Origin: Rhodosorus marinus CCMP1338
Taxonomy: Eukaryota > Plantae > Rhodophyta
Reading direction: 5' to 3'
DNA length: 64,000 bases
NCBI GenBank assembly: GCA_029953675.1
Contig: JAMWBK010000004.1
Coordinates: 1,798,001 to 1,862,000 of the forward strand
Shown here: piece by piece, positions 6,897 through 58,587 of the stretch
Layout of the letters: each line of letters starts with the position of its first letter
Position numbering within the stretch: position 1 is the first letter of the stretch
Made by a program: the position numbers and the translations under genes
The notes under the pieces: model-generated
The model's database searches: none
The model's input: only the letters and a program-made list of their open reading frames with translations
Told to the model about the DNA's origin: nothing

Positions 6897-9800
6897 ATGG
6901 AGGGAAGGACGAGGGCCAGTCTGATTTTGGAAAATGGTAGGAAAACTCTGGTCAGTACTGGGGCATAGCCCGCCGTGATAAACACCACGTTTGGCTGATG
7001 CGATCATCTCCCTATGGCAAAATCAGGACGAAAATTTGACGGTTGGAGTTTCGGGGCAGAGCACAGCGTTGCTGGAGAAGCCGTTTTTCAGACGGGCATG
7101 GTCGGTTATCCAGAAGCGCTCACTGACCCATCATATCATGGCCAACTGCTCGTCTTGACGTATCCGCTCGTTGGTAACTATGGAATTCCGTCTGACTCGG
7201 TAAGTGAACTTGTAGCCCTCACTTTCATGGGGTTGCAGACCGCTTTACGTACTCTGACGCTCGTTCTGTTTGTGAAAACATGCCAAGCTTGACCCAGAAA
7301 GTCAAATACCAAAATTCTTCGAGAGCGACAGGATCTGGGCTTCTGGCCTCGTTGTCTGCGAGTATTCTACGGAGTACTCGCACTGGAACGCCGAGAGATC
7401 TCTTTCGGAATGGTTGAAGGAGCACAATGTTCCGGCAATATCTGGGATTGATACCAGAGAGTTGACGAAGGTCATTCGCGAAGAAGGGACCATGTTGGGA
7501 AAGATTGACGTCGGTGGAGAAGGCCTAGATTTTGTGGATCCCAACCTGAGGAACCTTGTTGCTGAAGTATCTTCAACAACCGTGAAGCGAATTAGTAAGT
7601 TTTTGGCCCACTGCACAGCGCGACCGCATCTCGCCGAATTGCTAACTAGCAGTTCTGCACCCGTGGAACAGAGGGCATCGAGGGCGAAGATTCGTCATCT
7701 TTCAATGGCTTGACAGTTGTGGCTGTTGACTGTGGCATCAAGAACAACCAGCTTCGTTGCTTTCGGAAGAGAGGAGTGAACCTGATAGTGGTTCCGTGGA
7801 ACACAAACTTTTCAGAGCTTTACTCGGAGGAATCCTTCGATGGCTTATTTATCAGCAACGGGCCAGGAGATCCAAAACTATGCGAGGAGACGATCAAGAA
7901 TCTGGAAGATTTTATGTCGTCTACATCAGTGCCCGTGTTTGGTATTTGTCTTGGTCACCAGCTGTTGTCTCTTTCAGCTGGATTCTCCACATACAAGCTA
8001 CCTTATGGAAATCGCGGCCATAACCAGCCTTGCATCGATGAGATCTCCAAGAGGTGCTATATAACTTCTCAAAACCACGGTTTTGCGGTCAACGCCGATA
8101 AGGAGGAGTCGCCAAGCGGATGGCGCTCTTTGTTCTACAACGCAAATGACAAGACAAATGAGGGTATGTTTACAATGTAATTCTGTGGACACGGATGAGC
8201 GGACTCCCTGTGCTAAGTCATTTTCACAATTGTGCACTTTAGGGGTAATGCACAAATCCAAGCCGTTCTTCTCGGTCCAGTTTCATCCCGAAGCAAGAGC
8301 CGGACCACATGACACAGAATTTCTGTTTGATGTGTTCTTGGAAAGCGTCGCTAACCAAAAGAAAACTGGCGAGATACAATCCGTTGCACCACTACTCAAG
8401 AAGTATTGCGTAAACCTTGAGACCCAGCTGCCGAAACCGCCAAAGCTGAACAAGGTTGTAGTCCTAGGAAGCGGCGGTTTGAGCATCGGGCAAGCAGGAG
8501 AGTTTGATTACTCTGGGTCGCAGGCCATCAAGGCTCTGAAGGAGGAAGGGATATATACGGTTCTAATCAATCCCAACATAGCGACAGTTCAAACTTCACG
8601 AGGACTAGCCGACAAAGTCTACTTTCTGCCAGTGAATGTCGAGAACGTGATTAAGGTCATGAAGAATGAGAGACCAGACGGAATCCTGCTGACATTTGGT
8701 GGTCAAACGGCACTAAATTGCGGTACCCAACTGCATGCCATGGGCGCTTTCGAGGAGAACGACGTGAAAGTTCTGGGCACACCGATCTCTTCAATTCTGG
8801 ACACTGAGGACAGAGAGCGCTTCAATTCTCGCCTCGCCGAAATAGGAGAGCCTTTCGCAAGATCTGAGGCAGTTTCCAGCGTTGAAGATGCTGTTGTTGC
8901 GGCAAAGAATGTGGGTTACCCAGTCATTGTTCGTGCTGCGTTTGCTCTTGGTGGCCTGGGATCCGGTTTCGCTGACAATGATGCTGAGCTAGTTGAACTC
9001 GTGAACAAAGCCTTTACAGCATCCCCTCAAGTCCTTGTGGAACGATCCATGAGAGGCTGGAAAGAGGTGGAGTACGAGGTTGTCCGAGACGCCTATGACA
9101 ACTGCGTGACTGTCTGTAACATGGAAAATTTTGATCCACTGGGTGTTCATACGGGCGATTCGATCGTCATAGCACCGAGCCAGACGCTTACCGACGAGGA
9201 GTATCACATGCTACGGGACGCAGCCCTTCGAACGGTTCGCATGCTGGGGGTTGTTGGTGAATGCAATATTCAATTCGCCTTGAATCCAAACTCACTTCAG
9301 TATTGCACAATTGAAGTCAACGCGCGTCTGTCACGGTCATCAGCTCTTGCTTCAAAGGCGACGGGTTACCCGCTTGCGTTCGTCGCGGCAAAGCTTGCAC
9401 TCAGGAAGCGTTTGTCTGACCTACAAAACTCGATAACAAGGAAAACCATTTCCTGCTTTGAGCCCAGTCTGGACTATTTGGTGGTCAAAATGCCGAGGTG
9501 GGATCTTGCGAAATTCGAACGAGTTAGCCGAAAACTCGGTTCGGCCATGAAGTCTGTTGGTGAAGTCATGTCCATTGGGAGGACCTTTGAAGAAGCAATT
9601 CAGAAAGCGCTCAGGATGGTTACTGACAACTACGCCAGTGGATTTGAGCCTGGAATCGTTGAATACTCCGAAGAGGAAATGAAACGGCCAACAGATCAAC
9701 GACTTCTCTCAATAGCAAGTGGACTTGAAGCTGGCTTAACTGTGGACGAGCTCCACACCATGTCCAACGTTGACAATTGGTTCCTGCATAAGCTCAAGAA

Positions 9801-12800
9801 AATTGCAAACTTCCGACAGCACGTTCGGAAGCTGGCTGAGAGCTCGGCTGAGCTTGGGCGTGATGAAATTAAGAAAGCGAAACTTCTTGGTTTCAGCGAT
9901 CGTCAGCTCGCAAAGCTGATGGGCGACAGCGAAATGGGCATCCGTAAACTGCGTTTATCACATAACATTTGTCCCTGTGCGAAACAGATCGATACTGTGG
10001 CTGCAGAGTTTCCGGCTTATACAAATTATTTGTACTTGACATATTCGGCCCCAGAGAGCAAGGCCAATGATATAGAATTTACGGACCCCGGAATCATGGT
10101 CCTCGGATCCGGCGCCTATCGAATAGGATCTTCAGTGGAATTCGATTGGTGCGCAGTGAGCGCCATTCGAACCCTAAAACAGTACAACTATCCGGCAATC
10201 ATGATGAACTACAACCCAGAAACGGTTTCGACAGACTACGACGAATGCGACCGCTTGTACTTCGAGGAGCTTTCATTTGAAAGAGTGATGGATGTGTACC
10301 ACTTGGAGTCCGCGCAGGGAGTTATCGTGTCAATGGGAGGACAGATCCCAAACAATTTGGCTATGCTTTTGCACAGACAGCAAGTCAACATTCTTGGAAC
10401 GTCTCCGGATATGATCGATGGGGCAGAAAATCGCTACAAGTTTTCTCGCATGTGCGATAGAATCGAGGTTGACCAACCAAAATGGAAGGAGCTAAGCTCG
10501 GTGGAAGACGCGCAAGCCTTTTGCGCAAAGGTAGGCTAGATTCCTTTGGCAATCGATTTTCAATATTGCCACTACTGATTGGATTGATTATTCCTACATT
10601 TGAAGGTTGGGTATCCAGTGCTTGTGAGACCCAGCTACGTCCTTTCTGGAGCGGCAATGAACGTCGCACATAAACCAGAAGACCTCAACTCGTACTTGAC
10701 TGAAGCAGCTTCAGTATCAGCAGACTATCCAGTTGTCATCTCAAAGTTCATACTCGAAGCCAAAGAAATCGAAGTCGATGCTGTTGCGCGGAAGGGTGAA
10801 CTGGTTATGCATGTCGTTTCCGAGCACGTCGAGAATGCGGGAGTTCATTCTGGAGACGCGACACTTGTGCTCCCACCCGTGGATTTGGACCAGGTAACTG
10901 TTGGAAAGGTTGAAGAGGCCACTAGAATGGTCGCAAATGCTTTGAACGTCACCGGCCCGATGAATATTCAGTTCATCGCCAAAGAAAATGAAATCAAAGT
11001 CATCGAGTGCAACCTGAGGGCTTCTCGGTCGTTCCCGTTTGTGAGCAAGACAATTGGAATTGATATGGCAAGGCTCGCAACGAAGGTCATTTTGGGGAAG
11101 AACACCCGACCATATCCAGTTGACGTATCGAAGACTCCTCATATTGGAGTAAAAGTCGCGCAGTTCTCGTTTACTCGGCTTCTCGGAGCTGACCCCATAC
11201 TTGGTGTCGAGATGGCCTCCACAGGTAATGACTGCTCGTAGGTCCTTCAAGAAGGGCTTAATTTTCAACAAGGCTATTGCTGAACGGTCGACCTTTCAAC
11301 ATGCAGGAGAGGTCGCTTGCTATGGATCGAACCGGGAGGAAGCCTACCACAAGGCCCTACAAGCTACTGGACAAAAAATCAATCTCAAGAGCATTTGCAT
11401 ATCCATAGGCGCTTACAAGGAAAAGCTTGAATTTTTGTCCTCAGCGAAGATGTTGCAGTCCATGGGGATCAAGATTTACGCAACGTCCGGAACCGCCGAT
11501 TTCTTGAAGGAGCACGGTGTGAACGCAACGGTCGTCTTGTATCCAGCTCCGACCGAGTACCTAAAGGATTCTCAAGACAGCGTGGTCGAATTGCTAAGGA
11601 CTCATGAAGTGGATGCATTGATCAACATACCGAGCAACAACAAATACCGCCGAGTAGCCAGTTTTACCTCTAAGGGTTACCTTACTCGGCGGGCAGCAGT
11701 GGATTTCGGTGTACCACTTATTACCAACATCAAGATTGCAAAACTTTTGGTGAAGGCCGTGAAGTTAGCTTCGAAGCAAGAAAGCTTTCCATTGAAACCC
11801 TATGATGCGAGGTTCTCGTCTAGAGTGATCACCTTACCTGGAATGGTTAATCTCGACGTTCTGGATGCCAAGAATGTCGACTGGTCAAGCGCAACCGCAG
11901 CTGCACTGACGGGTGGCTTTACAATGATAACTACGGTACAGAAATGTTCTACCTTAACGGGCATAGAACAAGGTGAGACCAAAGCGAATGTATCAACGTT
12001 CGAAGCGTCATATCTCACCAACATGTGTCGTTGCGCAGAAATTGAGTCTGCACACAAAATTGCAGGAGGCGGAATTCGCTGCGACTATGTGCTTCTGGCT
12101 GCCGCATCGAACTCGAACTCTTCTGTAATTCCAGCCGCGTCAAGCATTTCACAGGGCTTGTACATTGAACCAGAAGCGGGAGAAAGCTCCCTTACACCCT
12201 GGCTTTCTCACTTTAAGAGTTGGCCATCGAGCTCGCCAATCATTGCCAAAGCATCTGGCCAGGCACTAGCTTCGTTGTTGTTCGGGGCAGTTTTGGAGAG
12301 GCGGGAGATTCACATCCGGCAGGTATGGCTATTGTTTTCCCGAAAAAGGCTTTCTTCGATGAGTGGAAACGTCCTTACTTGAATCGTCTGATGCACAGGT
12401 GAGAACTAGGGAGGATCTCCAAATAATTAGAATTAGCAAGGAGAAGGGAATGTCCGTCACTTGCGACGTAGATGTGATGGATCTCTACGCGAAATCTGCT
12501 TCGGACCTGGCAATTTCCGTTGCCGATAAGGAAGCTCTTTGGGAGTCGCTGGATTTGATTGACGCTGTAACTGGCCCACCGGAGTTGGTCATTTCGCTGC
12601 TGCTGCAGTCGGAGGGCGAAGGGCGGCTTCCCCAGGGTTGGGTCCGGTCAAGGCTCGTTGACAATCCAAGGAGAATTTTGGGATTGACGGATACGAAGGA
12701 TACGTACATAGAAGTCGATATGTCTGAGTCATGGGATGCTCCAGCAGCCTCGGAGCTTTCTGGAACGAAGTGCCTAGGAAAAGTCCGACGGGTTGTGCTC

Positions 12801-26113: not shown

Positions 26114-27898
26114 ATGGCGGAAGGGGAAAAGAAGGGAGGAATGTTTTTAAAGTCGTTGAGGCCCAAGACCTCAAAGCCGGCTCCAGAGCCTTCCGAGAAT
26201 CGTGTTTTAGACAAGATGGTGAAGGAGTTGGTGGACGATGTGCTGAGGACCGGTAGGTGCATGTTGATGGCATATGAGATATTTCTGCCCTCGTGACCCT
26301 TCAGCCTCACGGGTGTTTATGTGCTGATTAAGTTCCCTTTGGCTTGATTAGGACGAAATGGTCACTATGGAGAGGAGCTGAAGGTCAACCTGCTGGAGTT
26401 TTGTAGGTCGGAGCTGACCACTGCCTCGGCGTGTGCCAGAGCGATCCTTCATGCTCTCTCCTTGCGATCGCGGCCAGTGCTGGATATTTTAGATCTCCTG
26501 TATTTCATGGTGAAGAATCTGGCGAATTTCTATAAGCTGGTTGGCAACGATTCCTACTTCAGACTTCTGTGGCAGATCGGGCTCCCTTTGGATCTTGGAA
26601 AGAATGTGAAGAAGATTTTCAAGAGAAAGGATGGTCCTAAGCTGATATCCCCATCTTCGGCTGAAGGTAAACTGCAATCACAGAGGCTGGATACGCAGTG
26701 ATTGGTCGGTGTTGGTCTAAGTTGCTTCGATATGTGATTTGCCCCATACAGCAAAAGAAACGTTGATGCTGATTCGTGCCTGGTCCGAGGAGCTTGAAGG
26801 TGCGGGGATAGCGGATAGGTCGGCTACGTATATCACTGAAGCCTATCGACAAAAACAAAGCGTGGCTGAGTTTCCGGAAGTAGACCAGAGCCGAGGTCCG
26901 TACGTGGCATATGGGGAAGGGCCTCAGCCCACCGCGGCCGCGGCCGCGGCCTCATCTAGTACATCGCGCCGAGGGGTAAGTTTGCCAAAAGCGTGGACTC
27001 TAGTAACGAATTATAGATTTCTCACATGTGGACTCGTCCCTAGGTTTCAAACGCAGAGAACAAGTTGACTCTTGAAGATGCGGAAAACACTGTTTCGCTG
27101 CTGGAGAGTCAGCTGGAAAACGCAGATCCGGCAACGGTAGGCGATGATGACGTAATTGCGCAAGTTGCTGACCAGGTTAGGGTGGAGCTTCTCGACTTTC
27201 AAACGATCATGAGGAACTCGCCCAACGAGGATGTAAGAGCTATTGAAGTCAGTGAGAGGATGCAGGAGAGCCTCAGGAGATATGAGGGAATGGTGAAGGG
27301 GGATATTGTAGCGCCCATCGTGTCGGACTTGGGTCCACCGCAAGCGTCAACCCGTGTAGCTGCAGGCAGCGACGGAAACGTTACCAAGTCTAGATCCACC
27401 GCGTCGGCTCGACCAGTGTATGCGCAAGGATCCGTTCCGGTCGCCACTGGCGCCCCACCACAGGGCTATGGTGCTGGAGCCCCACCAGCCCCACCAACCC
27501 AGACTACACCTCCTCCAGGGTCGTACACTGTGACGTACGCACCTACCGCAGCCCAAGCTCCTGCTCAAGCTCCTCCGCAAGCTCCTTCGCCTCAGCCGTC
27601 TTCTGCTGGAGTTCCTATTGCAGTACCACTCACCGCAGCAGCCGTGGGCGGTGCTGCTACAGCCACTGCTATGTATCAGAGACCCGTTTCTCAAGCACCA
27701 GCGGCCGCGCCGCAAACGGGACCACCAACTGCCCAGCAAACGATTGCTACAACGAAAGCACCTGCACCTGTACCAGCACCAGCACCGGTACCAGCACCAG
27801 CAACTGCCCCTACCCCTGCCCCAGCGCCGGTCTTTATACCTGCTCCAGTGCCAGTCCCTGTCAACGTTCAAAGAGCACCTGCTAGCAAGCCCACGTCT

Positions 27899-27945
<47 letters not shown>

Positions 27946-30615
27946 AGCTCCAGCTCCAGCTCAGCCACGAGTGCCGGTTGTTGCGCCATCTCCTGTGTCC
28001 GTCCCTGTGACCACTCAAAGCGCTCCTGCACCTGCACCAGCTGCTGCACCCGTACCCGCACCAGCACCTGTTGTGGTACCCGCTCCTAAGCCCGCCCCTG
28101 TGACTACTCAAAGAGCTCCTGCTCCTGCTCCTGCTCCTGCATCTAAGTCTGCTCCTGCATCTTCCCCTATTCCTGCCTCTGCCCCTATTCCTGCCTCTGC
28201 ACTGGCACCGGCCAATGCTCCTGCGCCCGCGCCAGCTGTCGTTCGGGCACCAGGGCCAGCACCGGTTGTTGTTCCTGCTCCTGTGCCAGTCCCTGTGAAA
28301 GCCGAAAGAGCTCCAGCTGCTGTACCGGATCCTAAACCTGTTCCTAAACCGGTGCCTGCTTCCGCTCCTGCCGCACCACCAGGCGCTCCTGTTACTGTCG
28401 CGGTTCCTGTAGCAGCTCAATCAACAAAAGAGGTTCCCGAGAAACCTGCTGAACCTGAGGAACCAGCGCCGTCAACTCTGAAGGAGAAATCAACAGACAA
28501 GGGAGACTCAGTCGCTGCTGTGACCATGTCTGCGCCTGTTCCCTCCACCAAAGCAAGCGAAGCAGGGAACGTGAAAACCCTCACGAAGTTAAAATCGTCC
28601 TCAGATGTTCTTGATCAGTCTGCGTCGAAGAAAACGAATCTTGCACCTGAACAAGCTGTGAAGGGCATTCAAACTAGTGAAACGGGGCTAGATTCAGCAG
28701 CGGTCCCTACGGCCAAGGAAGCACCCATACCAGCGCCCGTAGCAGTTCCAGCTCCTGTTCCAAAGTCAGCACCTGCACCAGTTCCGGCTCCGGTAACAAC
28801 ACCAGTTCCGGCTCCTGTACCAGCACCAGTTCCGGCCCCTGTACCAGTGCCAGTACCAGCGCCAGTACCAGCGCCAGCACCAGCACCAGAGTCAGCACCT
28901 GCGCCAGCACCAGCACCCGAGTCAGCACCTGCGCCAGCACCAGCACCAGAGTCAGCACCTGCACCGGAGCCTGCACCAGTTCCGGCTCCGGTAACAACAC
29001 CAGTTCCGGCTCCTGTAGCAGCACCAGTTCCGGCTCCTGTAGCAGCACCAGTTCCGGCCCCTGTAGCAGCAGCAGTTCCGGCCCCTATACCAGTGCCAGT
29101 ACCGGCGCCAGCACCAGCACCAGCACCAGCACCAGCACCAGCACCAGCACCAGCACCAGCATCGGTACCAGCGTCAGTGCAGGTACCAGTACAGGTACCA
29201 GTAGAGGCACCAGCACAGGCCTCAGAACCAGTACCTGCCGCCACCGGACCCACAGAAGTATACGCTCCTGCTCCCCTGCCTGAATCCTATGCAGCATATG
29301 CACATGTTCCTGCCTACGGCGCAAGGGGGGCACCCGCAGAGGTCGTTTACACAACAATACCTCTTGGCCCCCCGGAGGCAGTACAGGGTTCGCCTGTTGC
29401 TGCGCAGCAGTACGGCGACCAGTACATGATACCGCAAGGGCGGATGATGGCAGCTGAGGCTCCGCCGCCACAGCAATATGCGCAAGTTTCTTACGCCGGA
29501 GCACCCCCGCCTGCGCGAGCTGAATCAAGGAGACGAACCGGGATTGATGAACCTGCTGAGTATCAACAATCTAAGCCAAAAGAGCCGAGCCGTAGGAAAT
29601 CCTCGCGTAATGCTCAAGGAGAATTGACGAAGTCAAAGTCATCAAAGAATTCGGGACGAAGCAGCTCTAGGGGAGTCCCGTCTGAGCAAGGTATGAAGAA
29701 ACAGCATTATGGCGCTAAGCCTTTCTCTGTTTGTATTTGAGAAACTTACTCGGCCTGTGGCGTATGCAGCACGTGTTCCTGTCGTGGCTGATCCGGATGG
29801 CATTGAACGGGCCTACATGACAGCACCATCGCAGCCTGTCCCCGCGCCGCAGCTCGTGGCTATCGGGGATCAGTTGTACTACGCTCACACCCAGTACACT
29901 GACGAGTCGGGCCGACCAATACAAGTAAGAAGTGTACCCACGGAACAACCTCCTGCACAAGTTCTATACGCTGGGCAGCCACCGCAGCAGCAGCCGTTGC
30001 AGCAGCCAGTAGTACGCCCGCAGCCTGTTGCAGCACCACCACAGCAACAGTTTGTATATGTTCCTGGAGTTGGCTACCTGCCGGTGAAATCGGAGCAATT
30101 TGCACAAACAAGCGCAGCCCCGCCCCAGTACCAGCAATTGGAGCAGCCTATAGAGAATGCACAACAGGCGCAGTATAAGACCGTTCAGGTGACACCACCG
30201 AGAAGCTCCTCCCGCAACTCTGCGAATTCAGCGATTGCGTCGAATCTTGAGGCGCTCACAAGACCCCAGACTGTTCGACAAGAACCGACCTATACAAGCG
30301 CCCCACCACAGCCAGCAGAGCTTGCTCCGGTTCAGCAACCTCAAGCGGTGGCACCCTCATACCAGTCGATTCAACAGGCGTATCAAACGGTCCCATCAGG
30401 ACAAGCCTACGTGATTGGAGTACCTCAACAAGCGCAACCGCAGCAGGTATGAAACGAACAGGGCTGCTATGCACATGCACTATGCCTCTTGTTGACAAAC
30501 AATTTTAATTCCGTACGTGTTGTAGGTCGTGTACGCACCGCCACAGTACGAACAACAACTGCCGCCGCCTCCTCCTCCAGATCAATACTACACTCAGTAC
30601 TACACTTCTCGCTGA
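26114..30615 (+). CDS. TOM1-like VHS-GAT protein with a very long Pro/Ala-rich linker and a Gln/Pro/Tyr-rich tail, multi-exon
   Basis: VHS-like exons ([23 protein letters not shown]...[27 protein letters not shown]...[14 protein letters not shown]...ITEAYRQK...EFPE) and GAT-like helices ([19 protein letters not shown]...[15 protein letters not shown]). These are followed by roughly 600 aa of PA/PV repeats. The final exon [29 protein letters not shown] ends at 30615. Confidence 0.72.
27760..29225 (+). repeat. Coding low-complexity (Pro-Ala/Val)n array with hexamer microsatellites and duplicated blocks
   Basis: (GCTCCG)n then (GCTCCA)n at ~27899-27960, (GCACCA)n at ~29111-29158, three [10 protein letters not shown] units at ~28870-28965, and two [12 protein letters not shown] blocks at ~28780 and ~28980. 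Confidence 0.95.
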
Positions 30616-47805: not shown

Positions 47806-49968
47806 TTATTTTCCTTTGAACTTTTCACCATTAAAAGATTGTTCGGTCGCGGGGGGTGGTGCCTTTGATCTCCTCGGGCCCCGCAGAGAAAGCAGGGCCT
47901 TCTCGAGTTCGTTGATCGCCGTTTTGATATCCTGAAAATCGAGAGCGCTTGCAGCGTACTTGGCTGCCTTTTGGGCTGCCGAAATGTCCTGGATTGAAGG
48001 TGAAAAGTTCGAAACTGGCTCACGCGGAATCGGAGTCGACTTGGAAACGCCGAGTCCGGTGGTCTGCGCGCTCGGAGGTGCTACATTCGGAGCAGGAGGC
48101 GGGACATCAGCACCGGATACTACTCTGTTAATGTCGCTCGGCATAATTGGGGGTGTTTCCACAAGCGGTGTTGAGTTTCGTGCTACCGCGCCTGTGATGT
48201 ACGCCACTTGCTCGCTACTGTGGAGGTTCTCCAAATGCTCATGACTGCAAGCACATTCGAAGACACAAGACGGTCAAATTCCCTTGTCAAAGGCTAAGTA
48301 CAAAACCACGAAAGCTATAGAGCTGACGGCGGTAACAAAACAAATACCTTGGAAATCGATTCTGGTATGGAAGCCTGCTTTCTTCCTTATCCGCCTGCGG
48401 ACTGTGGTAGTCGTGGAGATATATCGTTAGTCATCAAACGCAGTCCCCTGACAATCCGTATGTGACCCCGCAACTTACCCGCCATAGACTTCTTGATTCA
48501 AATTGGAATCCGAAGGTGGCCGTGGAAGGCCTCGTGCCGTGTTCGGCACGACACCTGTGTTCTGACCGCCCTCTACAGAAGGCGTCTGCGTAGGGTAAGA
48601 ACCACTACCCATTTCACCGGCTCGACCAGGACCCCTCGGAATTGGATCCTGCGAACTTTCAGCGGGTGGAGTAGGACCAGGACCAACTTGCCCAGCGTAC
48701 ACGCTAAGATCAACGGGTTGATATGGCACGCTCGGTTGGTCTTCAAATGAATGGTTCATCGCATACGAGTCAACCCCGTACGACGGCATCATCTGCACCT
48801 CACCACTGGGCTGGTATCCACTGGGCGGGTATCCGCTAGGCATTGAATAAGTGCCTTGAGTTGCTGGTGCTTCGTCAGTTGCATTGGAAAGCGGAGCAGA
48901 ATTTCCCGTCGACGAGCGATGGGCATCGCGGGGCTGAGTGTAAGGGTCATGCGGGGGTACTGAGTCATAGTTGCTTTCATATTCGTAGGGGTCCTGTCCC
49001 ATGGACCTACTGGATCCTCCAGTTGCTGGTGGGGACGGTCCCCCTGGTGCATGATCAGTAGAATGTGCCCCCAGGCCACTTTGTGATAGGCTTCTGTCAG
49101 GAGCGCTGTGTTTGTCGCCGAGGCCAAATTCACGAAGGAAAGCGCTTAGTTTCAACAGAACCAAGCAACTGAGTTGAACTGTAGCTTTTTTTTTGAAATA
49201 CCTTGACTCATCTTCCCCAGTGTCGGCAGCTTCCAAAGCGGCCGCTGCGGCTTCGGCCTCCTTTTTTGCTTTTATCTGTTTGTACTCTTCAATTTTTTGC
49301 TTCAAGAGCTCCGGGTTTTCGTTGGGACCTCCAGCGGTAGGCTTCTTCCCGGCGAAAACTGCCTTGCTAATTTCTACTGACTTGTGCCTCGAGAAGTTGA
49401 GCTTTTTCCTTGATTCATCGTCCAGAGGGCCAAAGTACTGGAGCACTTCGAATAGGATCTTCGCATTGTAAAACGTGCGAGCAGTGTTGATATCTGCCAT
49501 GCCCAACACATCGGCAGAATCGGCTTCAAAAAACGTATCATAGGCCAGTTCTGCAATGTGCGCTTGACATGCTTCCTTCTTTATCTCCGGATCAATTTTG
49601 GCCCGTTGCTCTTTTGCCTAATGACGTACACAACGCAGTACCATTCAGGGGGATCAGGCCCACTGAAGGTTTTGGGTGACCACTACTTGACTGGGGTTTA
49701 ATTACCTGCTGCATGAGATCCTCCAGAAGAGCGGTGGACTTCGGATCATCTCCAGTCCTCTGCTTCACGACTAGTTGTGCTGCAAAGATAAGGCCTGCGC
49801 TGGGTCCCAAACTCCTTCTTCAGTCCACTGCTGCTAGCAAAGAAAATTTGTTATTGGCTACTTACAGTACGCCGAGGTAATATAGTCCCCTTCCAGCTCA
49901 TACCTCTTCGCACTGGACAAGTACTTCCCAATAGATTTTAGGGATGCAGGAACATTTCCGGAAGACAT
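47806..49968 (-). CDS. VTA1: VTA1/LIP5 (Vps4 cofactor: tandem MIT domains, disordered linker, VSL domain), multi-exon
   Basis: MSSGNVPASLKSIGKYLSSAKRYE...AY, FFEADSAD...ARTFYNAKILFEVLQYFGPLDDE...KLNFSRHKSVEISKA...KPTAG, and VSL domain ISAAQKAAKYAASALDFQDIKTAINELEKAL. Confidence 0.9.
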
Positions 49969-51349: not shown

Positions 51350-52774
<1,425 letters not shown>

Positions 52775-55320: not shown

Positions 55321-57910
55321 TCAGAAGTTTGCGTGCCTCAGCCCTTCAAGCCAGAGTTCCAAAGCATCAATGCCAACTTTCTGGATGCCGACTCCGGGCT
55401 CTTGCGATACGCTCGCTGTTGATAGGCTCTGGATCGAGTCTCTGTCAGCTCCTTTCGTGTCCGTCAGGGTGAGCACGTAACCTAGTCGCCAAGAAGAAAA
55501 CATATGCTTTTCAGCTTAAACCGAAGTGGGCTGAGAGGAGTCCGAGCTCCGACAGTGCCGCAGGAATGTGGCTGTGTTCCCACTCACGGAAACTGCGCCC
55601 GTGTGGGGTCGGGTTCTGGGTTGTAAACAATTCGCTCAGAATGTTTGGGTTCGGGAAGATATCCTCCACGACATGCAGCAGTGGGCGTCTTCTCTTCAGA
55701 TGCTTCTTCTGGGACAACGAACTTGGCCGAATTTCGGGATGGTTTTGCATTGCATGCAAGGTGGCTTCAGAAGGTATGCAGCCTTGTAGCGGTTCCCATA
55801 TGGCCTTGGCCGCCGTTAACGAGAAGCGTCCAAGCTCAACTAGAGTCTGAGCATGTCAGATAGAGCACCTATTAGCGCGCTTTCTAGAGGGGCAGCAGGG
55901 CGATATACCGGCAGAACTCACCTTAAGCTCGCTCACTCTGAATAATACAATGAAATCTTCCCGATCCACCAGGGTATGGAAACGGACTATGGCTTTGATC
56001 AACCTGTCCAATATGTTGGTCTGGAGGTTGTCTACTAGGAGAGCACCGTCCACAAAGATAATTCCTCCACGTCGGAAGAGCTCCTTGCACAGAGTCCCGC
56101 TCAGCAACTCGTGTGGACCTCTCATTCGGCTGAGCTTTGATATTGCTCTCTGAGAGACGCTGATGAACTTTACCGAGGTCGCCAGCCGCAGGTGCACTGT
56201 CCACGAGAAGGATGTGAACGAGTCCGCCTTCTCCGGTACGAACACATAGTCTACGTCAGCAACTTGAACTGGATACTTTCCAGGCTTGATCTTCTCAGCA
56301 GGGAAGTCTATGGCGCCGCTCTTCGACGCACTCAGAATCAAGCTCTTCAGTTCATGGCGATCTAGTGTCAGGGTGACATCAATAAATGCAAACAGCTTTT
56401 GAGTTGAAGCTCACTGTCAACGACATATGGTAGCAGGGGATCACGTCGCCATCTCAAAAGGGCTCACCTTCGTTCCGGACCAAAAACCTACACGACGCCC
56501 AAGAAGTACTGATCCTAGGCCTTGGGCTGCTGTGCAGAGTTCTGGCACGGCCGCCCAGGTCTTTGAATGAGAAAAACCCCACGATTCCACGGTCACTTAT
56601 TGGCAGAGCACTGTTGTGGGCTCTCGAAAGGACGCTGCCAACAGTAAGGAGGAAGTCTACCTGCTGGGAACTTTTATGATCCTGTGTTTTCCGAAGCTTA
56701 AAGTCGGTCACTGCCTCTTCGCTTCCTGGGAAACTGCCACAGAAAAACTCCTTCTTCTGCACGAGTTCATCCGCCAGCGACTCGAGCCTCATGTTCTGCT
56801 CATGGAGAGCTGAGAATGCGAAGCAAGCCAACTGCATACCCCCAACCCGGGTTTGACATGAGCGATCGATTGACCATGTGAGTGCAGGCAGAGCTCAGCG
56901 TCAGAAGCCACAGATCAATCTTTTTGGTCGTACCTTGGTCGCATCGACAAACTTCTCCATCAGGCCCCTGTCAGATTGATTGTCCATACTGTGCCTGGAA
57001 TGCAGCACCAGCGTTGTGGGCCAGGACTCCCACGGAGGGGGATAACTACTATGCAAACTTGTCGGAATCGCATAACAAGCATACAGACTGGCATCGCCAG
57101 ATCCCTCAACTCGCAATATTCCATTCCAAAGGTTGAAAGATCCAGCAGGCCTGCTCAGTGAAGTTCTCTCTGTCCACGACCAAACGAGCGATCTGATTCA
57201 GTATTTATGGACATCGGGCATCAGGCAAATCTTCAATTTACTCACCTTCCTCTCCGCCGTACGGTCTTTTCCTATTGTAGGCGGGTGTTGGACGACCCTC
57301 CTCTTCGTCAGAGTTCGTTTGCATCGTTTTCAGGTGCACGGCCGTGTTTCGGGCGGCGCCGGGTGTGCCCCTACGATTCTCAGGTTTCCCTCTGTCCTCT
57401 CGCAAAACGAGGCCAAGAATTGTGTTTTTTCGATTTTCGATGTTGGTCACTATTCCAATCACATCACCATCTCTCAGAGTCTTTGGAGCGGAGCCCTTCC
57501 CAACGCGTTCGCCGTTCACATATGTGTGATTGGACGACCTGAGAACACGCGTTACGAATTTGGCACTCAGTACGGAAGAGCACAACCATCTAGGAGGGAG
57601 ATTTAGCTCTTTCAGCTACGTACATGTCCTCAATCTGAACCGCGGAACCAGTATTATTTTCGTTATGGGGAACAGACGCCACGAACTGCAGACGGCTTAT
57701 TCTCGTCAAATCGAATCCCTTCTCCCTAGCGAGGAACCTAAACGTCTCGCGACCAACATTCGCCTTCTCTCCAGCATAACCCTCGAGCGTCAGGATACAC
57801 CTATCCGTGGTCCACTCAGCATACGGCTGGGCAGTTGACGAAGAACCGCCGATACCAGACGCCGGATTGTTTCCATGACCGTTGTAAATGAGGAAAAATC
57901 CGAAACGCAT
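55321..57910 (-). CDS. FHA-domain protein with putative SPOC-like, TASOR/Chp1-like alpha/beta and PIN-like domains; 7 exons, roughly 690 aa; start uncertain
   Basis: The FHA domain joins across intron 57539-57623 (ANVGR...ISRLQF...VQIEDM/SSNHTYVNGERVGKG...LRDGDVIGI). The exons that follow join in frame: WNGILRVEG...WPTTLVLHSR; LACFAFSA...LADELVQKKE...IVGFFSF; DYVFVPE...VKFISVS...ELFRRGGIIFVDGALL; SF/RYVLTLTD...GIQKVGIDALELWL*. The FHA call is well supported; the C-terminal domain names rest on motif recall. Confidence 0.7.
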
Positions 57911-58587
57911 CTGAATCACTCCTCATCTCCGCCCACATCCAACACCAAAATGTACAAACGCCCCTCCCCCCTCCTTTCCCTGCCAAAACGAGAAGCGAAA
58001 GCGGCAACCAAACCAAAATCCAAGATCTTATCAAGTAAAACAAAAAAGTGACTCACTCCGTTCCCATTGGCAACCGAGAAGAAGAAAAATAAAATATAAG
58101 AAAGCGATTTCCTCAGTCCGTTTTGCAATATACACGTCAGCTCTAACCCAGGAAGTAGACAGAGGAAAGTCCCGCCCACTTCTGCGTTAAGCTCGACCAG
58201 GAAGCCCAAACTCACCATCCACAACAGATTTTCAAATAAAAGCAAACCGAACACTACTCAATTTAGGGGGTTTTCCAGCCTTTTTTGTTGATTGATAAAA
58301 ATGATTGATCTACCTAGGGCGGTGGTTTCGGACTAGATATTGACTGAACTTAATATTAGGCCTGGTGGTGTGTGTTTGATGTGGGGTTGGGGGGAGGGGC
58401 TGGCTTTTAGGGCAGTGTAGTGTGCTGTGGGGAATCATTGTTTTTGTTTTTATGAACGAAACATCCCCGTTCGATTCGACAGGGTGTGTAGTGTTGATTC
58501 ACAGGTATAGTCCAGTGGAGTTCAGATTTGCACTGCCTGTTGGAGCCTCGTCCCATACTCAGAAACGTTTCAGGTTTGCAGAGGGTG

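Follow-up and report, generated by a model that had tools for sequence, protein, structure and literature searches.

To our knowledge, HUSH (human silencing hub) and RITS (RNA-induced transcriptional silencing) are the two known silencing complexes relying on a SPOC-DomII-PIN scaffold. In another context, FHA adaptors such as NBS1, PNKP, aprataxin, and Rad53/Chk2 use an N-terminal phospho-threonine reader to tether an effector module to a phosphorylated partner. The scaffold proteins TASOR and Chp1 share the SPOC and DomII/PIN domains, while their N-termini differ (Douse et al., PMC7532188). In plants, the Parallel Spindle 1 proteins (PS1/PSL) have an FHA domain at the N-terminus and, at the C-terminus, a PINc nuclease domain of the SMG6 type, and are supposed to play a role in RNA decay (PMC2581889, PMC3071787). 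The present work deals with a gene of the red alga Rhodosorus marinus CCMP1338 found in a stretch of 64,000 nucleotides of contig JAMWBK010000004.1 (GenBank assembly GCA_029953675.1, positions 1,798,001 to 1,862,000 of the forward strand), hereafter called the window, from whose first letter all positions below are counted. This gene is real, expressed, and lineage-restricted, and it codes for an FHA protein whose C-terminal ~480 residues form a conserved module joined to the FHA domain in one messenger RNA (mRNA). The explanation retained for it, tentatively and with rather less than even confidence, is that of an adaptor which depends on phosphorylation and carries a PIN-type domain resembling that of TASOR.

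The exon model was built from the three-frame translation and an enumeration of GT..AG pairs, and was checked against transcripts. In the resulting protein, the FHA domain and a linker are followed by three conserved blocks, namely D2 (residues 201-392), D3 (residues 385-540, the most conserved of them), and D4 (residues 541-679), which ends with the conserved helix ELWLEGLRHA. The coding region is organised as follows.

55321..57910, minus strand: whole coding region, with the ATG at 57910 and the stop codon ending at 55321; 7 exons, 679 residues.
57624..57910, minus strand: exon 1, residues 1-95 plus 2 bases of codon 96; N-terminus and first half of the FHA domain.
57246..57538, minus strand: exon 2, second half of the FHA domain (SSNHTYVNG...DGDVIGI) and the weakly conserved linker.
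56934..57169, minus strand: exon 3, first half of D2 (GSFNLWNGILRV...WPTTLVLHSRHS...MEKFVDATK).
56468..56831, minus strand: exon 4, second half of D2 (LACFAFSAL...DFLLTVGSVL...DRGIVGFFSFK) and first strand of D3 (CRFLVRNE).
55922..56361, minus strand: exon 5, residues 394-540, the highest conservation; invariant GP.EL, E487, RRGG 490-493, VDG 497-499, FR 534-535, E538, and K540.
55588..55846, minus strand: exon 6, residues 541-626; LVELGRFS...WEPL...HVVED...ELF...FR.
55321..55481, minus strand: exon 7, residues 627-679 and the stop codon; YVLTLTD...SQEPGVGIQKVGIDALELWLEGLRHANF.

All six introns have GT..AG borders and measure 75-106 nucleotides each. The 679-residue model is identical to P0062, that is, GenBank KAJ8905830.1, the hypothetical protein NDN08_002335 of R. 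marinus, which bears the UniRef name FHA domain-containing protein. Besides, a second strain of R. marinus contributes two transcript-derived sequences, P0001 and P0064 (the latter also of 679 residues), which are 93% identical to the window protein and confirm six junctions out of six; since every junction is confirmed by these transcripts, the FHA exons and the downstream exons belong to one mRNA. A previous sequence-only reading of the locus had joined seven exons in frame into about 690 residues, and it was right as to the exons, the end coordinates, and the junction between SFR and YVLTLTD, the actual product being of 679 residues. The complementary DNA check which it had proposed finds its answer in the same transcripts, which put the FHA and downstream exons in one gene, and the algal peptides which it had quoted are all present, the blocks that contain them being conserved in orthologues which share 42-48% identity.

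Regarding the translation start, 57910 is supported as the true start codon because P0064 and a distant orthologue begin with MRFGFF and MRYGFY, respectively. A short open reading frame lies just upstream.

57816..57926, minus strand: upstream open reading frame of 36 codons (MRSDSDAFRIF...), out of frame and overlapping the main ATG.

In the EukProt sequence P0001, from the other strain, the protein begins at this upstream ATG and stays in frame (MRSDSDAFGFF...), which implies a 1-nucleotide difference between the strains. As for intron 6 (55482-55587), it contains a second in-frame donor, at 55522 (before GTTTAAGC), whose use would add 22 residues (EWEHSHIPAALSELGLLSAHFG). P0065, an isoform of 632 residues from the Marine Microbial Eukaryote Transcriptome Sequencing Project (other strain), keeps intron 6, reads into it, and stops after SFREWEHN. 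Retention or alternative splicing of intron 6 thus occurs at times, and would cost the protein its conserved C-terminal strand and helix.

The family is real, conserved, and narrowly distributed, since a full-length orthologue keeps both the architecture and the introns, and since the searches yield few relatives. With the C-terminal 508 residues as query, P0001 was the sole match of a word-indexed search through 5.8 billion proteins, such searches giving overall 1-3 relatives. When 1.84 billion cluster representatives were searched exhaustively with phmmer, 8 matches were returned, 7 of which are exon-sized or transcript fragments of orthologues showing 40-53% identity, the eighth being discarded as a spurious bacterial repeat protein. 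No match was obtained when the Joint Genome Institute (JGI) metagenomes were scanned with the exon-5 domain. Across the 1.84 billion representatives searched, the protein is restricted to Rhodosorus and a few related algal samples. Orthologue contigs were spliced against the window protein (alignment A3), which gave the following sequences.

Two contigs of SRR22824290: full-length orthologue (L004), 684 residues, 47% identity.
SRR23287143: C-terminal orthologue, spliced contig.
JGI sample 3300016877: spliced-transcript orthologue.
European Nucleotide Archive metagenome ERZ23487348, 100-621: partial orthologue L003.

The orthologue from SRR22824290 keeps the domain order of the window protein (FHA domain, linker, C-terminal domains), and shares intron positions and phases with the window gene. 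In L003, which is without intron 4, RYLVRTKDRVKFKDLIV runs uninterrupted where the other species carry the intron, and this gap-free sequence suggests an intron loss within the family.

The N-terminal part of the protein comprises two regions.

57391..57805, minus strand: FHA domain, residues 36-145, spanning intron 1; candidate phospho-threonine contact residues R54, S72, R73, and N99.
57150..57390, minus strand: linker, residues 146-200, spanning intron 2; lowest conservation, 80% between the two strains.

On profile evidence, the FHA domain is real: the Pfam FHA family PF00498 matches the window protein with 29.4 bits, for a cut-off of 20.7, and the orthologue with 43.3 bits, the alignment covering positions 1-66 of the 67 in the profile, and weak matches to the FHA domains of SLMAP and Rad53 are found in the PDB. 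Phospho-threonine contacts are predicted at G53-R54, S72-R73, and N99 (in SSNHTYVNG), so that both the Pfam score and the residues bear out the earlier description of an FHA domain with the Arg of VGR, the Ser of ISR, and the Asn of SSNHT. At the His position of the Ser-(Arg/Lys)-x-His loop, the window protein has Gln75 and the orthologue a His (ISRNHF). The linker contains a basic patch, NRKRPYG (residues 184-190, 57256-57276), where the orthologue L004 has KKPLKRPRV, and this patch may serve as a nuclear localisation signal. The algal protein shares with NBS1 (FHA-BRCT2), PNKP, aprataxin, and Rad53/Chk2 the logic of an N-terminal phospho-threonine reader followed by an effector module; it differs from them in that Pfam detects no signature of a BRCT, kinase, phosphatase, or HIT domain.

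The module which follows the linker can be divided as follows.

56472..57149, minus strand: domain D2, residues 201-392, spanning intron 3; beta-rich pattern and 2 helices.
56087..56495, minus strand: D3a, residues 385-485, spanning intron 4; alternating strand/helix pattern.
55324..56086, minus strand: C-terminal region, candidate PIN-like, residues 486-679, spanning introns 5 and 6.
55778..56098, minus strand: TASOR-aligning segment, residues 482-563, spanning intron 5.

Pfam searches with the full protein, the orthologues, the consensus, exon-level peptides, and domain fragments gave the FHA domain alone above the cut-off, and sequence and profile searches of the PDB, for which the queries were the whole protein and alignments A1, A4, and A5, returned no Chp1 (3TIX included), TASOR, SPOC, or PIN chain. 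No TASOR SPOC or DomII/PIN chain was found in the PDB. Readings of D3 as a BRCT (NBS1-like), HAD, TIR, or vWA domain were dropped, as none of them gave a profile signal.

The similarity on which the retained explanation is built is that to human TASOR. A sequence of the DomII/PIN region of this protein was used as query and confirmed, P0010 being returned with 100% identity and the annotations PF23314 and PF24630; in P0010, Pfam locates TASOR_alpha-beta at residues 6-100 and PIN_TASOR at residues 104-245, with 134 and 180 bits, respectively. The TASOR motifs quoted in the sequence-only reading, among them RHVVFLTEKNIKMLSSYTDNGIVVATAEDF, are genuine and present in P0010, one of them spanning the junction into PIN strand beta-1. 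From these motifs, a resemblance of two segments of the algal C-terminal half to TASOR had been proposed. It is supported, at directed P values of 0.0005-0.045, for ELFRRGGIIFVDGALL...ELKTLVELGRFS, which is aligned in the same register by hhalign and HMMER; by-eye motif matches beyond residue 563 were dropped, global hhalign chaining these later motifs neither to the TASOR PIN nor to the SMG6 PIN.

In quantitative terms, the best high-scoring segment pair obtained by BLASTP of D3+D4 against P0010 aligns ELFRRGGIIFVDGALL with a 16-residue TASOR string (E 0.084). When the orthologue profile A5 is compared to the TASOR profile A6 by hhalign, 71-93 columns are aligned with a score of 20.8 (P 0.045); a score at least as high is obtained in 3 of 200 column shuffles (P 0.015). 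With HMMER, filters off, the hidden Markov model (HMM) of the orthologues gives P values of 0.004 and 0.011 against TASOR, while the TASOR HMM gives 0.0026, 0.0024, 0.012, 0.00055, 0.021, and 0.067 against the six orthologues, and shuffles are consistent with these values. Four of the six orthologues align in a single register, residues 92-172 of P0010 facing residues 482-563 of the window protein (P 0.0005-0.012). The match is near-ungapped over ~75 residues, runs from the end of the TASOR alpha/beta domain through the first ~70 residues of its PIN, covers ~80 of the 240 residues of DomII/PIN, and includes the strand GGFIVSDE, with which the Pfam start of PIN_TASOR coincides. Smith-Waterman z scores are 1.5-3.6 against the TASOR PIN and ~0 against the PINs of SMG6 and Regnase-1, whose sequences were verified in the PDB, the known PIN pairs TASOR-SMG6, TASOR-Regnase-1, and SMG6-Regnase-1, used as controls, also being at ~0. 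As far as these alignments go, the similarity is weak, but specific to TASOR and reproducible. D3a is a possible counterpart of the TASOR alpha/beta (DomII) domain, and the presence of a TASOR-like PIN module in the algal protein is plausible but unproven.

In terms of architecture, the algal protein and TASOR have in common the weakly aligned stretch ELF..GG.I..D...L ... LK.L.ELGR followed by an R.V..LT[DE] strand, in the same order, and the C-terminal placement of the module after a beta-rich domain. Unlike TASOR, the algal protein begins with an FHA domain instead of a pseudo-PARP, is without the ~600-residue linker and DomI, and counts 679 residues versus 1670; its acidic set is also better conserved than that of TASOR. 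As a separate observation, the mammalian TASOR transcripts P0010-P0012 end with the tail DAVLTLTPLELGVGISQH, their last 18 residues, which is not known from the main TASOR isoform. This tail has VLTLT and GVGI in common with algal exon 7 (YVLTLTD...EPGVGIQ), a coincidence put down to probable chance (hhalign P 0.32, VLTLT not being kept in the algal orthologues).

Further features of the C-terminal region recall PIN domains at large. Four acidic columns, D498, E538, D602, and D/E634, stay conserved across 5-6 orthologues. In its best local matches (P 0.2-0.28), hhalign pairs FRYVLTLTD with REVVLLTDD, the catalytic beta-4 strand of SMG6, and IIFVDGALLV with PVVIDGSNVA, the catalytic beta-1 strand of Regnase-1, and these two strands fall in the correct order. 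For comparison, the genuine PIN of TASOR does not reach a better hhalign score against SMG6, and matches it on the same strand; HMMER against the SMG6 PIN gives a P value of 0.08. The D3+D4 model from AlphaFold2, of low confidence (predicted local distance difference test, pLDDT, of 34.5), displays a beta-alpha-beta-alpha-beta-alpha order from residue ~494. Acidic columns, strand matches, and beta-alpha order are compatible with a PIN-like domain that keeps its metal ligands, without proving one.

As for D2, its description as a SPOC-like region in the sequence-only reading is left unsupported by tests of low power. Against an alignment of PHF3, SPOCD1, and SHARP, whose SPOC sequences were verified in the PDB, hhalign matches only LWNGILRV with IWKGFINM (P 0.41), and HMMER gives P values of 0.13-0.37. 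Smith-Waterman z scores against PHF3 are ~0 for two orthologues and 2.2-2.8 for a third, compared to 1.7-2.0 for genuine SPOC pairs such as PHF3-SHARP, and reach 1.5-2.5 against an unverified sequence of the TASOR SPOC region. This same sequence is likewise missed by Pfam SPOC, in keeping with the low power of SPOC tests. One orthologue fragment, P0008, matches positions 10-54 of Pfam SPOC (E 0.17), and the match is lost when the peptide is trimmed or joined to the next exon. By such weak tests, D2 is neither shown to be a SPOC domain nor excluded from being one. D2 opens with an L-W-x-G-h-L strand that resembles strand beta-1 of the SPOC phospho-readers SHARP/SPEN, PHF3, SPOCD1, and RBM15, and the order of its hydrophobic blocks can be superimposed by eye on the PHF3 SPOC. 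Chp1, the RITS core protein of S. pombe (3TIX), has three contiguous C-terminal domains of a total size similar to that of the algal module (PMC7532188); it carries a chromodomain where the algal protein has its FHA domain, and no sequence or profile match to 3TIX was obtained.

Put together, the phospho-dependent adaptor reading would work as follows. The gene would encode an expressed, probably nuclear adaptor whose FHA domain would bind a phospho-threonine mark on a partner and bring the C-terminal module to it. The last ~190 residues would adopt an alpha/beta fold of the PIN type, a distant relative of the DomII/PIN end of TASOR, with IIFVDGALL as strand beta-1. Since acids are conserved at PIN metal-ligand positions (D498, E538, D602, and D/E634), the module could cleave RNA or DNA as an active endonuclease, unlike the inert scaffold of Chp1. 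Chromatin silencing, transcript processing, and damage signalling are candidate targets, a silencing role being a matter of speculation. Several results weigh against this reading. The TASOR test is post hoc, the hypothesis having arisen from the very similarity then tested, and no TASOR result reaches database-wide significance: the hhalign probability of the match is only 1.2%, and a directed P of ~0.001 becomes E >10 over the ~25,000 families of a Pfam-wide search. Global hhalign does not extend the match past ~80 residues. In the TASOR alpha/beta domain, the initial two thirds are unaligned, and only the last ~35 residues of D3a match. With E values up to 10, Pfam finds no PIN_TASOR, TASOR_alpha-beta, PIN/NYN, or 5'-nuclease family in the protein, five orthologues, the consensus, or fragments. 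The AlphaFold2 models are unusable (pLDDT 31.6 for the 485-residue C-terminus, 34.5 for D3+D4), and Foldseek of the low-confidence D3+D4 model against the PDB finds nothing (best E 1.8, template modelling score <0.2). Finally, the assignment of the acidic columns to PIN metal-ligand positions, drawn from weak local alignments to TASOR, SMG6, and Regnase-1, is unproven, and the algal T-D/S-E spacing departs from the canonical (T/S)-x-D PIN motif (PMC3071787).

The C-terminal 480 residues could also be a lineage-specific module resembling TASOR and Chp1 by chance, which would make the protein a plain FHA adaptor with an effector of unrecognised fold, for instance in cell-cycle or DNA-damage signalling. 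This is nearly as likely as the adaptor reading: the phmmer search yields its 7 orthologue fragments and no other family, the C-terminal region has no Pfam or PDB match, the JGI scan is empty, and neither the Pfam-wide E value nor the BLASTP one speaks for a detectable relative, whereas the recurrence of the same ~75-residue near-ungapped TASOR register in four orthologues with three methods, starting exactly at the TASOR domain boundary, tells against chance. A further point against chance is that D2 scores slightly higher with the unverified TASOR SPOC sequence than with other SPOC domains (Smith-Waterman z 1.5-2.5), a level equal to that of the genuine pair PHF3-SHARP. Conversely, the resemblance might go further than the PIN end, the protein being a third TASOR/Chp1-type SPOC-DomII-PIN scaffold in which the FHA domain replaces the pseudo-PARP or chromodomain, and which would nucleate a HUSH/RITS-like complex for heterochromatin or co-transcriptional silencing in red algae. 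All the points in favour of a TASOR-like PIN adaptor apply here too. In addition, the strands and helices predicted in D2 have an order and sizes compatible with a SPOC barrel, the top hhalign match to PHF3/SPOCD1/SHARP falls on the W-x-G strand opening this domain, one orthologue fragment has the above-mentioned Pfam SPOC match, and the contiguous D2-D3-D4 layout resembles Chp1 (PMC7532188). Such a scaffold is nevertheless unlikely, given that the Pfam match is not reproduced with trimmed or joined peptides, that the SPOC profile tests give P values of 0.13-0.41, and that the conserved acidic residues suggest an enzyme more than a scaffold. Similarly doubtful is the proposal of a third TASOR/Chp1-type architecture outside animals and fungi, with an FHA domain placed before SPOC-DomII-PIN, in which the PIN may keep its full catalytic acids and the ancestral module could be a phosphorylation-recruited nuclease. 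A red-algal counterpart of PS1/PSL, acting in RNA decay through an FHA domain and an SMG6-type PINc, is very improbable. The end-to-end layout is the same, from an N-terminal FHA domain to a C-terminal domain which, in the alga, is a candidate PIN, both lineages belong to Archaeplastida (PMC2581889, PMC3071787), the best local hhalign match to SMG6 lies on the beta-4 LLTDD strand, and the four acidic columns are conserved. However, the SMG6-like PINc of PS1/PSL is recognised by SMART and Pfam, while the algal domain has no PINc, PIN_4, or other PIN match, its Smith-Waterman z against the SMG6 PIN is ~0, and its HMMER P is 0.08. PS1/PSL proteins also have roughly twice the length and an extended middle region, the comparison being by description only.

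The neighbouring long open reading frames of the window are ordinary housekeeping genes. Those identified are the following.

8083-12382, plus strand: carbamoyl-phosphate synthase large chain with MGS-like domain.
48475-49509, minus strand: Vta1-like protein.
51350-52771, minus strand: Glu/Leu/Phe/Val dehydrogenase (glutamate dehydrogenase), 301 bits.

An open reading frame of 891 residues at 27065-29740, in a stretch rich in guanine and cytosine (0.54-0.59), is without Pfam match.

The combination of FHA and PINc domains as a layout is already known from plant PS1/PSL. If the resemblance to TASOR is due to chance, the gene still encodes an expressed and strongly conserved orphan module of ~480 residues, refractory to structure prediction as it now stands and attached to a domain whose logic is known; this module would be a tractable target for structure determination, of interest chiefly to algal specialists. 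If, on the other hand, a related module does exist in a red alga, the origin of the HUSH/RITS scaffold would be pushed back to early eukaryotes, and its fusion with a phospho-reader would speak for a recruitment driven by phosphorylation. Should the PIN acids be functional, they would suggest a former role for the now-inert PIN domains of TASOR and Chp1.

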